Shown in pieces: positions 2,084-9,559 of a stretch of 64,000 nt of DNA. Made by a program: the position numbers and the translations under genes. The stretch comes from Auanema rhodensis (Eukaryota; Animalia; Nematoda). Every line of letters begins with the position of its first letter. The first letter of the stretch is position 1. Location of the stretch: positions 8,680,001 through 8,744,000 of the forward strand of contig OZ059894.1 in NCBI GenBank assembly GCA_964057225.1, given 5' to 3'. Under the pieces are notes generated by a model. The model made no database searches, was not told where the DNA came from, and saw only the letters and a program-made list of their open reading frames with translations.

Positions 2084-4217
2084 TTAAAACCTCTTAGAAA
2101 TTCGACAGTTAGAAGCTTGTGGAGAAACTGTCGTACCAAATTTTTTTCTCATAGTTGGAACTTCAATGTCCGGTTCAACCTAGAAAACATTGATCATATA
2201 AACTAAAACGATAAAGATATACTCTAAATCGGTTGAAGAAATTGGATCCAAATAAGAAGAGCTCCATTCTAGCTAGCCCTTCTCCCAAACATTGTCTCTT
2301 TCCAATAGAAAATGGTATCAACTCGTCAACCTTTCTAAGTTTTCCATTTTCATCGATGAAACGCTCAGGTTTGAACTTTTCTGGCTCGGGGAAGATCTGT
2401 AAGCAATAATTTGAAAAAAAAATTCAAAGCAGAGTGAAATTAGCATAATCTAGTTCACGTAACACGTGAAAATTAAAAAAATATTTTTCAATGCAAATAT
2501 TAAAAGACGGGTTGTTTCTATTCTTAAGTGAACCACTAATTCGATTAATGGAGAACTAACATGTTCATCATACAAAACAGTAGAAATCTGAGCAACAATT
2601 CCTGTTCCAGATTTCACTAAATGTTCGCCAACCATACAATCTTGATTTACAGAGTGAAGTAAATTCATAGGCAGAAGGTTAGCCATTCTCTGTGTTTCCT
2701 AAGCATAATAACAATAAAAATATTTAAAATAGAAAACAAACATTTAAAACTGCATTGAAATAAGGAAGATTGTTTTTATCACTCATATTAATAATTCTTT
2801 CCGAACCAATTACATCGTCTAATTCTTTATGTATTTTTTCCTGAATTAAAAAGGTAGTCATTCATTACGTTAAATAAATAATAATACTTGGACTTCTGGA
2901 TGATTGAGAACATAGACAATACACCATGTAAGAGTATTCGAAGTTGTCTCTAGACCAGCTAGCCATAAATCATGGCATGTATTCACTAATTGAATATCAC
3001 TTGAGAAAAAATGTTAAATATCTCAGTTCAGAAATTGAATGACTTCTTAAAATTACCTAAAGGACTCCTTATCCCCCTCAGATTCTCTTTTCTCTTGCTC
3101 CTTCAAGTAAGCTTCTACGTAATCGTTTGGATCCAAAGAAGAATCTTTAGTTCTCAATTCTTCACGATGCGCTTCGATATGGCGTTGGAAAAATTCAAAA
3201 AACTTGTCTCGAATGCTGTCAAGCCCAAAACTCAAAAACTAAGAAAACTATTAATGGAGAAAACCCTTACTTTGCAATCATTGTTTTGAAATGAGGGAAA
3301 TGCCGCAATTGAAAGAAACATGCGACAAGTAAGAAGTCAGGCCTTCCACCTATCCGCATTATTTCTGTGATCATTTGTTTTATGCTCATAAATTCGTCTA
3401 AATGACTCTTAGAATTTCAGATGTGAATACATCGTACGAATATTCGAAAAAATACCTCATCAAATCGATAACCAAATAATAATTGATTGATTATTGAACC
3501 TACGGCAACATCAATATGATCCTGTATTTTAGGAATAACTTCATTACAGTTTTTCAAAGCTTTGGTAAGTTCTTCAACTTCAAGAATTATCTGAAATAAA
3601 AACAATACTTCACAGAATAAACAGAAATTTGTTATTCACCCGTTCTTCCATTGCATTTTTACCTAATCCAACATCACGAAAATGATGAAGAACGAAACGT
3701 CGATGATCCTTCCAAGTTTCGGCATTAACATCAAGTATTCCGAACACTCCGCCTAGATTTTCAATCATATCTGTTCATAACATCATAACATAATATTCCT
3801 GACCTCTATAATTGAATGTCAATTGTTCGAAGGAATATTTATCGGAAAAGCATTCTCCGTTCCGAACAAACGTTTCTTTCATAGTCTTGTAATCAGTTAT
3901 TACAACAAGTGGCATTGTTCCTAGAAAAGTGAATATATTCAATAAGAAAACCTAGAATTAACACTGAAAGTTTTCATACCAAGCCAAAACGTGTAAACAG
4001 GCCCATACTGTTTTTTCCAAAGCTCAAAAGCACCATAACCTGGTTCGTATTTCGAAAGTGTATATGTATTTCCAATTAATGGTAACGGAGTTGGACCTAC
4101 AAAAATAAATTTAAGAATAAATTAATCAGCTTAACCTGGTGGTAAGTTACGACGTTTCCAATAACATTCATTGAAAATTATCCAGCCTAATATTACAGTA
4201 AATACAATCAGAATCAT
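2084..4217 (-). CDS. Cytochrome P450, CYP33-like, copy A1
   Basis: N-terminal membrane anchor then [18 protein letters not shown]-helix AGLETTS, ETQR, PERF and heme motif [21 protein letters not shown] trans-splice acceptor just upstream of the ATG. Ends ISKRF*. Confidence 0.92.
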
Positions 4218-4397
4218 ATCTCAAACTGAAATTAGAGTATAAATATCAATACAGCTAAGGTATTGTTTCTCACAACTAAAGAGAGGAATAATAATATAAA
4301 ATTTTTCTCGTCATAAATTTTTGCTTGTTGCTTGCGAAAAGTTCGTTTGGTCTGAAATATGCTTACTGTCATAACAGAAAAGTGGAAAAATGTTGGC

Positions 4398-4466
4398 ATA
4401 AAATGTTATCTTGCAAACTAAACTTCGAAATGTTGGCATTATATGTTATCTTGCAAACTAAACTTT
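4398..4466. promoter_or_regulatory. Direct repeat (2 x ~38 bp, starting ~4388) with GATA-type sites upstream of P450 A1; same in A2 at ~9730-9808
   Basis: AAATGTTGGCAT...ATGTTATCTTGCAAACTAAACTT occurs twice; each copy has TTATCT (AGATAA on the gene strand). A role as an intestinal GATA element is inference. Confidence 0.4.
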
Positions 4467-6710: not shown

Positions 6711-7435
6711 TTTCACTAAAATGAATTAAAATGTTGGGTGATTCAATTCTTTATATAAGGAAAACGCTAAAGAATTACGAAAGAACTAGAGATAAGCGAG
6801 TGCCTCATGAAAGTAATAGAATCAAAACGAATTAAGAGAAAGTTAAAAAGAGAGAGCAAAAAGAAAAGTATTGGTTTCGAAAAAAGCGAGTTTTATAAGC
6901 TTCATGAAGTTGTTAAGGGTAGAAAAAACAGTACAACAACTTTGAAAATCACAGAAAAGAAACAAAATGGTTTGAACTTAAGCATTGAAACTTTTTTAGC
7001 CTTGAGATTGTTAGCGATGCGCTACTTCTGCTTTCGCAATTTGCCGATCCCTTAGAAAAGACATTGTGTAACAGCCAATAAAGCAAACACGAATAGAGCG
7101 CTGAATGCTCAACGCTTTTTTTCATGAACGACTGAAAATTTTAATAGCCTTTAAGCTATCTTTTCAAGAATTAACACTAGCTCAATCAATGCAAAACAAT
7201 GACTGAACCGGAATAAATCTTCTGAATTAAAAGAAAAATATAAATCGGCTACTTGATGGTTAATAAAATTTTGAAACGTAAATTTACCGAGGTTTCCAAA
7301 ATCAAAGTTTCAATAGAATATTTAAATTGATGCTATTAGATTTTTAGAATAAACATATTTCTGGTATTTCTTCATTACACTAAAAAAAACAATTATGCAA
7401 ATTAGAAAGAATTCTAAATTTATTCCATGAATGAA

Positions 7436-9559
7436 TCAAAATCTAAAGGATATGCGACAATTTGAAGCCTGAGGAATCATCGAAGCTCCGAAAACCTTTT
7501 TCATAGTTGGAACTTCAATGTCCGGTTCAACCTAGAAAACATTGATCATATAAACTAAAACGGTAAAGATATACTGTAAATCGGTTGAAGAAATTGGATC
7601 CAAATAAGAAGAGCTCCATTCTAGCTAGCCCTTCTCCCAAACATTGTCTCTTTCCAATAGAAAATGGTATCAACTCGTCAACCTTTCTAAGTTTTCCATT
7701 TTCATCGATGAAACGCTCAGGTTTGAACTTTTCTGGCTCGGGGAAGATCTGTAAGCAATAATTTGAAAAAAAAATTCAAAGCAGAGTGAAATTAGCATAA
7801 TCTAGTTCACGTAACACGTGAAAATTAAAAAAATATTTTTCAATGCAAATATTAAAAGACGGGTTGTTTCTATTCTTAAGTGAACCACTAATTCGATTAA
7901 TGGAGAACTAACATGTTCATCATACAAAACAGTAGAAATCTGAGCAACAATTCCTGTTCCAGATTTCACTAAATGTTCGCCAACCATACAATCTTGATTT
8001 ACAGAGTGAAGTAAATTCATAGGCAGAAGGTTAGCCATTCTCTGTGTTTCCTAAGCATAATAACAATAAAAATATTTAAAATAGAAAACAAACATTTAAA
8101 ACTGCATTGAAATAAGGAAGATTGTTTTTATCACTCATATTAATAATTCTTTCCGAACCAATTACATCGTCTAATTCTTTATGTATTTTTTCCTGAATTA
8201 AAAAGGTAGTCATTCATTACGTTAAATAAATAATAATACTTGGACTTCTGGATGATTGAGAACATAGACAATACACCATGTAAGAGTATTCGAAGTTGTC
8301 TCTAGACCAGCTAGCCATAAATCATGGCATGTATTCACTAATTGAATATCACTTGAGAAAAAATGTTAAATATCTCAGTTCAGAAATTGAATGACTTCTT
8401 AAAATTACCTAAAGGACTCCTTATCCCCCTCAGATTCTCTTTTTTCTTGCTCCTTCAAGTAAGCTTCTACGTAATCGTTTGGATCCAAAGAAGAATCTTT
8501 AGTTCTCAATTCTTCACGATGCGCTTCGATATGGCGTTGGAAGAATTCAAAAAACTTGTCACGAGCAGTGAGAAATATGAAAAAAAAAATTTCACCATTA
8601 GAGTGTGCATTATTTATTTCTCACTGTGTCGCCATAGCTTTAAAATGAGGGAAATGCCGCAATTGAAAGAAACTTCCCATAAGTAAGAAGTCAGGCCTTC
8701 CACCTATCCGCATTATTTCTGTGATCATTTGTTTTATGCTCATAAATTCGTCTAAATGACTCTTAGAATTTCAGATGTGAATACATCGTACGAATATTCG
8801 AAAAAATACCTCATCAAATCGATAACCAAATAATAATTGATTGATTATTGAACCTACGGCAACATCAATATGATCCTGTATTTTAGGAATAACTTCATTA
8901 CAGTTTTTCAAAGCTTTGGTAAGTTCTTCAACTTCAAGAATTATCTGAAATAAAAACAATACTTCACAGAATAAACAGAAATTTGTTATTCACCCGTTCT
9001 TCCATTGCATTTTTACCTAATCCAAAATCACGAAAATGATGAAGAACGAAACGTCTATGATCCTTCCAAGTTTCTCCATTAACGTCCATAATTCCATAAT
9101 ATCCTCCTGAATAGAAATTATTTCAGAACTAGAGTGCTGGTTAACCTCTGTATATATTAACAAACTTGGGGAATGTATATTTATCGGAAAAGCATTCTCC
9201 GTTCCGAACAAACGTTTCTTTCATAGTCTTGTAATCAGTTATTACAACAAGTGGCATTGTTCCTAGAAAAGTGAATATATTCAATAAGAAAACCTAGAAT
9301 TAACACTGAAAGTTTTCATACCAAGCCAAAACGTGTAAACAGGCCCATACTGTTTTTTCCAAAGCTCAAAAGCACCATAACCTGGTTCGTATTTCGAAAG
9401 TGTATATGTATTTCCAATTAATGGTAACGGAGTTGGACCTACAAAAATAAATTTAAGAATAAATTAATCAGCTTAACCTGGTGGTAAGTTACGACGTTTC
9501 CAATAACATTCATTGAAAATTATCCAGCCTAATATTACAGTAAATACAATCAGAATCAT
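7436..9559 (-). CDS. Cytochrome P450, CYP33-like, copy A2 (one intron lacks an AG acceptor; possibly a pseudogene)
   Basis: Near-identical to A1 except for three divergent patches. The intron at 8624-8577 ends in TTTTCAT instead of TTTTCAG. Ends ISFRF*. Confidence 0.8.

Follow-up and report, generated by a model that had tools for sequence, protein, structure and literature searches.

Tandem CYP-33-like P450 paralogues in Auanema rhodensis, homogenised except in segments that map to substrate-recognition sites

Main

A 64,000-nucleotide stretch of the nematode Auanema rhodensis genome (contig OZ059894.1 of assembly GCA_964057225.1, positions 8,680,001 to 8,744,000; hereafter the window) carries four cytochrome P450 genes, all on the minus strand, which were located by a translated search with a draft A1 protein. 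The genes form a tandem two-gene repeat, A1–B1 followed by A2–B2, with a period of about 5.34 kb. The first genes of the two units, A1 and A2, are almost identical across exons, introns and intergenic DNA, and are deeply diverged in three short stretches (islands i, ii and iii). When transferred onto a structural model of a relative, these stretches fall in segments that correspond to substrate-recognition sites (SRSs) 1, 3 and 6. The best explanation, to which we give a probability of about 0.5, is concerted evolution in which selection nucleated the islands. The window is part of a 181-Mb assembly, the whole of which was searched for copies of the islands.

A homogenised block interrupted by islands of divergence

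To compare the two units, positions 1800–7100 were globally aligned with positions 7101–12500, and identity was read in 50-column windows. From 2143/7497 to 6759/12099, a block of 4.6 kb, identity is 98–100% per window, islands excepted. Gene A outside the islands shows six differences in approximately 1.8 kb (about 0.3%), and nine of its introns differ by one base in total. The A–B intergenic region (4218–4600) also carries one difference between units, in agreement with the shared upstream region proposed in an initial annotation made from the sequence alone. That annotation had described A1 and A2 as near-identical genes broken by three sharp divergent stretches, a description that the global alignment confirms, and the island peptides that it quoted are correct. 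It had overlooked the second P450 gene, B, which the repeat unit also carries.

Within the islands, the identity of A1 and A2 falls to 46–54% (island i) and 26–56% (the core of island ii; Table 1). Island ii had been drawn as a single stretch, 3209–3328. Its core, 3209–3288, is indeed diverged, whereas 3320–3326 is a detached micro-patch of 7 nt, separated from the core by 31 identical nt, and is not fixed in other samples. Island iii had been taken for a sharp, enclosed island. Instead, it has no far edge: its divergence runs on into an unalignable 3′ flank, and the island is the open left end of the homogenised block.

The depth of this divergence was assessed by Nei–Gojobori counts over the 54 fixed island codons and the other 441 codons of A. 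In the fixed islands, the proportions of synonymous (pS) and non-synonymous (pN) differences between A1 and A2 are 0.89 and 0.32, compared with 0.013 and 0.005 in the remaining codons. Windowed identity and the balance of synonymous and non-synonymous change along the two genes, a comparison that the initial annotation had proposed, therefore show an extreme contrast between islands and scaffold. The corresponding values for the scaffolds of A and B are 0.70–0.79 (pS) and 0.25 (pN). Protein identity in the islands is 0.55 between A1 and A2, about 0.50 between A and B, and 0.51 between A and its closest outside relative. By these counts, the A1 and A2 islands appear to be about as far apart as separate genes. 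The enclosed introns, 3 and 6, had been called unalignable; they align between A1 and A2 no better than shuffled sequence (z of 1.5 and 0.4, respectively), and they are the sole A introns that conversion has left un-overwritten. Split over three taxa, the non-synonymous distances (dN) in the islands give branches of 0.19 (A1) and 0.15 (A2), and neither copy has the look of a long-dead pseudogene.

Two tandem units in independent sequencing runs

Long, near-identical tandem repeats are error-prone in assembly, and the pattern could in principle come from a collapsed or mis-polished repeat or from allelic haplotypes placed in tandem. Contigs from four public runs belonging to three studies, two of DNA (X4 and X5) and two of RNA (X11 and X13), were placed on positions 6761–12400; the comparison between samples is thus one of contigs, not reads, from a few samples. 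Some of the contig sets are larger than the genome, so samples may be mixed. Run X4 comes from an independent study and bears a different organism label. Its unitig depth is 172–173 over the parts shared by the two units, 91.6 and 91.2 over A2 islands ii and i, and 85 and 88 over the A1 island versions, which are visible as 'skips'. The spacer between the units has a depth of 89, and a 6.9-kb contig that runs into the right flank has a depth of 85.7. Moreover, X4 contigs connect the end of one unit, through the spacer, to the start of the next. Run X5 exhibits the same 2:1:1 pattern with more noise. Both island versions are present in the two DNA runs, which come from different studies, and in the RNA contigs, and the letters that vary are all paralogue-specific in the reference.

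Because of the 2:1:1 depth pattern and the contig graph, the data fit two tandem units per genome rather than a collapsed repeat or two alleles. The initial annotation had named collapse and allelism as the outcomes that would undo its reading; judged from the short-read k-mer depth of X4, A1 and A2 are neither, and an assembly artefact is extremely improbable.

Gene conversion is ongoing at the locus

At 34 of 34 positions where any of the four runs departs from copy 2, the run carries the copy-1 letter. No ordinary single-nucleotide polymorphism was found in 5.6 kb, including 1.1 kb of unique sequence, across the four runs. The samples must then be very close relatives, or point mutation must lag far behind conversion. 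The possibility that the runs come from different species was considered, and the complete lack of ordinary polymorphisms over this length argues against it, pointing to the same or nearly the same taxon.

The sites affected differ from run to run. In X4, a single 2× unitig spans 9177–11504, within which B1 and B2 are the same; it is mostly of B2 type, with copy-1 letters at two sites, 9826 and 10593. Both X5 copies are of copy-1 type at 7563/7576 (residue 464) and at 11140–11160. At codons 216–218, the micro-patch is A2-type throughout in X4 and X5, where one 2× unitig (8643–9025) represents both copies; X13 shows the A2 type only and X11 the A1 type only. The depths of these unitigs are undiluted, so the homogenised sites are not popped assembly bubbles. 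Islands i and ii behave differently: in X4 and X5, their A1 and A2 versions, like the two letters at site 9026, are each retained at 1×. Interlocus gene conversion is ongoing at the A/B locus, and the sites that it shuffles flank islands whose two versions stand side by side.

The 3′ end of A2 may differ in the X5 sample: no X5 contig of at least 95% identity covers A2 island iii (7437–7496), and the contig over the spacer turns to unrelated sequence at 7436. A2 island iii is present in X4. Loose contig ends in X4 and X5 at 7780–7819, 9648–9836, 10634, 11340 and 12142 may be repeat branches or insertions.

Old duplicates with a homogenised core

Near-100% identity that takes in non-coding DNA and a second gene is also what a recent segmental duplication of the A–B unit would leave, and patches from a third paralogue could subsequently have entered one of the A genes; short patches of A in B2 show that ectopic conversion does occur at the locus. 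However, such a history gives no account of the 3′ end of A2, where 21 codons are homologous to the P450 C terminus yet saturated at silent sites, and then give way to an unalignable flank of their own. Nor does it account for the unique spacer of 670 bp, or for the sequence past the right edge of the block. There, 69 nt (6765–6833 compared with 12105–12172) are still 80% identical before homology disappears, and this tail is best read as the decayed remnant of a longer, old repeat.

A source for the patches is also missing from the genome. Searched against the 181-Mb assembly, the four internal island sequences each match only themselves (E ≤ 1), no island has a third copy, and the spacer occurs once and is not a repeat. 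Because the islands are unique and identity to the nearest remaining P450 paralogue reaches only 61% in the best-conserved exon, there is no living donor for a recent import. In addition, B1 and B2 are 2% diverged compared with 0.3% for the A scaffold, so the block is not of one age. A fresh duplication is, in our view, improbable. The diverged 3′ end of A2, the 80%-identical tail, the lack of a donor and the shuffling of copy-specific letters support the proposal of the initial annotation that A1 and A2 are old duplicates under gene conversion, with a homogenised core.

Positions of the islands on the P450 fold

SRS locations were taken after Gotoh, as given in PMC3224734. Exons 3, 6, 7 and 12, searched one by one, matched no solved structure, and most exons had no match in Pfam. 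Because these single-exon searches gave nothing, the SRSs were mapped by way of a natural full-length homologue, an Aphelenchus CYP-33C1-like protein that is 46% identical to A1. It was modelled with AlphaFold2 from a 31-sequence alignment (mean predicted local distance difference test score, 92.8), and the residues of A1 and A2 were transferred onto the model by alignment. A MAFFT alignment with all exons as separate rows misplaced some of them and was discarded, with only the well-placed exons kept.

In this model the islands map to the B′–C loop, the start of helix G and the β4 region (Table 1). The initial annotation had assigned them to SRS1, SRS2/3 and SRS6 and had suggested such a mapping. 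The modelled positions correspond to SRS1, SRS3 and SRS6, whereas the supposed SRS2 part, the patch at residues 216–218, lies in helix F′ of the model and varies between samples. For exon 4, a direct alignment to CYP2B and CYP2C structures places residue 112 at CYP2B position 114, among 13 positions reported to matter for CYP2B function. A1 has L at this residue, A2 has M, B1 has V and B2 has I. The C terminus of A aligns without gaps to that of CYP2R1, which supports the SRS6 placement. We take residues 480–483 to be CYP2B 477–480, on the basis of the conserved G-x-x-x-x-P turn and the CYP2B4 sequence.

Fixed differences separate A1 from A2 at 27 residues. The SRS1, SRS3 and SRS6 segments account for 25 of these; SRS segments make up 19% of the protein. 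Each copy is derived at family-conserved positions in a different place: A1 in island i, with F for Y and A for G, and A2 in island iii, with AS-M for TT-V.

Intron 6 and the expression of A2

Neither A copy has an AG acceptor at intron 6, where the reference reads TTTTGG in A1 and TTTTTTTTTTCAT in A2. The A1 intron spans 3225–3270 (46 nt, GT..GG), and X11 and X13 RNA contigs join ...GCAAA to GCTTGAC... across it; AG sites occur within a few bases of the acceptor that is used. For A2, we infer splicing at a non-AG site from binned depth and length conservation. The intron is modelled as 8577–8624 (48 nt, GT..AT), with a GTGAGA donor and a run of ten T residues followed by CAT. This model gives an exon 7 of 168 nt, as in A1, and keeps the length found in all relatives.

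The A2-type depth was obtained by subtracting the shared and A1-type contigs from the binned depth. Neighbouring bins agree (26.8 and 27.0 in X11; 25.3 and 25.4 in X13) only if about 80 of the 128 positions of 8513–8640 are covered, which leaves a gap of 48 nt. At island i, where the depths are known, this calculation recovers them. Other ways of processing the intron were considered and set aside. Starting exon 7 at 8567 with a CAC acceptor makes the protein three residues shorter than every relative and fits the depth less well. Canonical GT–AG or GC–AG choices lose at least 21 residues of helix G or need poor donors. If A2 retained the intron, as a transcribed pseudogene, the bins would disagree (16.8 compared with 27.0 in X11; 15.8 compared with 25.4 in X13), which makes retention unlikely. 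About half of the RNA depth at 9026 falls on the A2-specific letter, which puts transcription of A2 roughly on a par with that of A1.

In the passages of Ragle et al. 2015 (PMC4484395) that cite Aroian 1993 and Zhang and Blumenthal 1996, a U-rich tract by the 3′ splice site is described as able to direct splicing in C. elegans without a terminal AG. A1 intron 6, spliced at TTTTGG, resembles the sites described there. Unlike the cases in those passages, the A genes are a natural paralogue pair in which the same intron lacks AG in both members, with use of the A2 site deduced from depth.

Selection or mechanical barriers at the islands

In the mechanism that we propose, the starting point is conversion, which repeatedly overwrites the 4.6-kb block, with its exons, introns, intergenic DNA and both genes. 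The B′–C loop, the start of helix G, and the β4 turn with the 3′ end have been spared for long enough to saturate silent sites and to randomise two introns. Amino-acid differences in the SRS segments would first have been protected by selection against tracts that swap them, and neutral sites trapped between protected codons, in introns 3 and 6, would then have diverged. The resulting heterology would halt the extension of heteroduplex at the island edges, which could explain why these edges are sharp. The outcome would be two co-expressed enzymes of 495 residues that share a scaffold and an upstream region and are separated by the 27 fixed differences. Two observations favour this proposal. 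The nine other introns and the intergenic DNA are homogenised, and the only introns to escape are those flanked by diverged SRS codons. Moreover, coding constraint has been kept in the islands of both copies. We infer that selection rejects tracts that cross the islands.

Several findings weigh against this proposal. A1 and A2 do not differ in SRS4 or SRS5, nor, in our alignment, at the classical CYP2B SRS2 positions 206 and 209. SRS regions are the fastest-evolving parts of any P450, and under random placement both internal islands would each lie at least 50% within an SRS with p of about 0.04. Island iii is simply where the block ends. Polymorphism of the F′ patch, and of the clusters of B1/B2 differences in the same regions, shows that these are unprotected. 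Because synonymous sites in the islands are saturated, dN/dS gives no signal of positive selection (pN/pS is about 0.36). Finally, a full-length A2 enzyme presupposes the splicing deduced from the depth arithmetic described above.

Some of these findings would be expected if, under the same concerted evolution, the islands were neutral relics, in which sudden heterology made stretches unconvertible and mismatch-triggered rejection has kept them so, with no selection on specificity. The heterology could have come from a rearrangement or an indel affecting intron 3 or intron 6, or from a short patch of a since-lost paralogue, and the overlap with SRSs, for which the chance value above is not tiny, would reflect nothing more than the variability of these regions, the highest within P450s. 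Each internal island has an intron near its centre, flanked on either side by about 17–30 nt of exon, and the lengths of these introns differ between the copies (51 and 39 nt for intron 3; 46 and 48 nt for intron 6), so an intron indel or sudden heterology could have started them. Short patches between diverged paralogues do occur here, as B2 codons 131–139 (A-type at 7 of 8 sites) illustrate. The polymorphic F′ patch and B clusters in SRS regions, and the splice acceptors that have decayed in the islands of both copies, point the same way. A mechanical heterology barrier also predicts the same sharp edges, as a diverged stretch blocks extension whatever its function.

However, neutral relics sit poorly with the homogenised state of the nine other introns and the intergenic DNA, which evolve fastest when unconstrained. 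In the islands, pN is about one-third of pS and the branches leading to the two copies are symmetric, as expected if both versions are constrained. The concentration of 25 of the 27 fixed differences in SRS segments, the derivation of each copy at family-conserved positions in a different SRS, and the lack of a donor in the genome also count against them. We regard neutral relics as a serious contender, on balance doubtful.

A stronger form of the selective proposal is that A1 and A2 are a long-lived pair with a shared scaffold and private cassettes. Here, conversion would outpace point mutation, selection would have held the three cassettes apart for roughly the time since A and B split, and islands that cannot be repaired would retain decayed acceptors in intron 6. 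Conversion that cannot reach the islands, and so cannot repair them, would explain why both copies have non-AG acceptors. Taken as a whole, this account is tentative and rather unlikely.

Locus layout and gene B

The coordinates of the genes, the block and the islands are collected in Table 1. Sequence comparison indicates that the genes belong to the cytochrome P450 family (PF00067), CYP2 clan, and are CYP-33-like genes of the nematode type. Exon 11 of A1 matches Pfam PF00067 with an E value of 1.2e-20 (profile positions 376–433), and the haem-cysteine motif F-x-x-G-x-R-x-C-x-G is found in A1, A2, B1 and B2. The I-helix AGLETTS, the K-helix ETQR, KPERF and the post-anchor RRNLPPGP are all present in the translated models. 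Ten introns of A1 are GT–AG, with intron 6 as the exception. The A and B proteins are 57% identical. The closest proteins are from Auanema sp. (59% identical to A1), Haemonchus, Necator and Ancylostoma (55–56%), and Aphelenchus (CYP-33C1, 46%). The source names of these relatives, all of them nematode, include CYP-33C1, CYP-33C9 and 'CYtochrome P450 family'. No protein more than 60% identical to A1 was found in an exhaustive search of 1.8 billion representatives and one word/profile search. The best PDB matches are CYP2B, 2C and 2A.

Table 1. Coordinates of the P450 repeat units, the homogenised block and the islands in the window, and modelled positions of the island residues
Feature	Position	Strand	Description
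A1, CYP-33-like P450	2084–4217	−	12 exons, 495 residues; exon model
A2, paralogue of A1	7436–9559	−	12 exons, 495 residues under the model used
B1, second P450 of the repeat unit	4601–6710	−	13 exons, 495 residues; mapped from B2
B2	9943–12050	−	13 exons, 495 residues; twelve GT–AG introns from spliced RNA contigs
Homogenised block, copy 1	2143–6759		Most of A1, A–B intergenic DNA, B1 and the 49 bp that precede its start codon
Homogenised block, copy 2	7497–12099		From global alignment and depth of DNA run X4
Island i, A1	3721–3834	−	Codons 96–116 and intron 3 (51 nt)
Island i, A2	9075–9176	−	Intron 3 of 39 nt
Island ii core, A1	3209–3288	−	Codons 228–239 and intron 6; G′/N-terminal part of helix G
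Island ii core, A2	8561–8642	−	Counterpart of 3209–3288
Micro-patch, 7 nt	3320–3326 (A1); 8674–8680 (A2)	−	Codons 216–218; VAC in A1, MGS in A2
Island iii, A1	2084–2142	−	Codons 475–495 through the stop codon
Island iii, A2	7436–7496	−	FGASMIP in place of family-conserved FGTTV.P
Spacer between B1 and A2, unique	6765–7435	.	First 69 nt 80% identical to 12105–12172
Residues 96–116			B′ helix and B′–C loop in the model; SRS1
Residues 230–238			First turns of helix G (model 235–243; helix G 231–261); SRS3, alignment less certain here
Residues 475–483			β4 hairpin, between short strands (model 481–489); SRS6
Residues 216–218			Helix F′ and F′–G′ loop in the model; no SRS, not the C-terminal end of helix F

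B1 and B2 differ by 39 substitutions and 19 amino acids. The differences are concentrated in two clusters, 5421–5819/10763–11160 and 6164–6382/11505–11723, in which 5% and 10% of bases differ. Their dN/dS is about 0.5, and they lie in regions of the B′–C–D, F′, G and early I helices. X4 lacks the first cluster. At every paralogue-specific site of B, the RNA contigs show B1-type letters only. In B2 codons 131–139 (11497–11525, compared with 8994–9020), 7 of the 8 sites that differ between B1 and B2 carry A-type letters, and this stretch looks like a conversion patch of about 25 nt from gene A.

A two-copy local tandem repeat of about 35 nt lies in the A–B intergenic DNA (4385–4460 and 9727–9802) and is the same in both units. 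RNA contigs with a depth of 21–24 begin just to the right of the two-gene repeat (12136–12400), which indicates an expressed neighbouring gene.

Discussion

The tandem P450 genes CYP2D6, CYP2D7 and CYP2D8 of primates are homogenised, introns included, with SRSs that remain paralogue-specific (Yasukochi and Satta 2015, PMC4419802), and in these genes trees of SRSs and of non-SRS regions disagree (PMC4419802). A1 and A2 are likewise P450 paralogues homogenised by conversion with SRSs that escape. The contrast in A1 and A2 is far more extreme than in CYP2D, about 0.3% in the scaffold against saturation in the islands, with edges sharp to a few bases and randomised introns. In addition, the repeated unit holds two genes, and only SRS1, SRS3 and SRS6 differ. 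Unlike the species series available for CYP2D, the evidence for A1 and A2 comes from one genome and a few samples. The pattern has thus already been described, and A1 and A2 are a new and unusually clean example of it rather than a new kind.

Islands of divergence also persist under gene conversion in the GOT1 paralogues of Tigriopus californicus (PMC3728101). The general pattern at the A/B locus matches that of GOT1, and so does its usual reading, in which conversion removes divergence wherever neither selection nor heterology stands in the way. Unlike in GOT1, the islands of A1 and A2 can be placed on a well-understood fold, and conversion is seen shuffling flanking sites between samples. 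The theory of such islands under conversion between duplicates is reportedly due to Innan and to Teshima and Innan.

For annotation and variant calling, the locus carries a warning: short reads of the two copies are indistinguishable outside about 300 bp, and gene finders that require AG would mis-model intron 6. Because paralogue-specific sites in the flanks of the islands are visibly shuffled between samples, conversion can be measured here, and its rate, direction and tract ends would be readable from ordinary population resequencing. The A1/A2 pair amounts to a natural domain swap, in which two enzymes differ almost only in SRS1, SRS3 and SRS6, and it bears on substrate choice in a nematode P450 of the xenobiotic type. 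If the cassette reading is true, the 27 fixed differences would be a naturally minimised list of specificity determinants of CYP-33-like enzymes.

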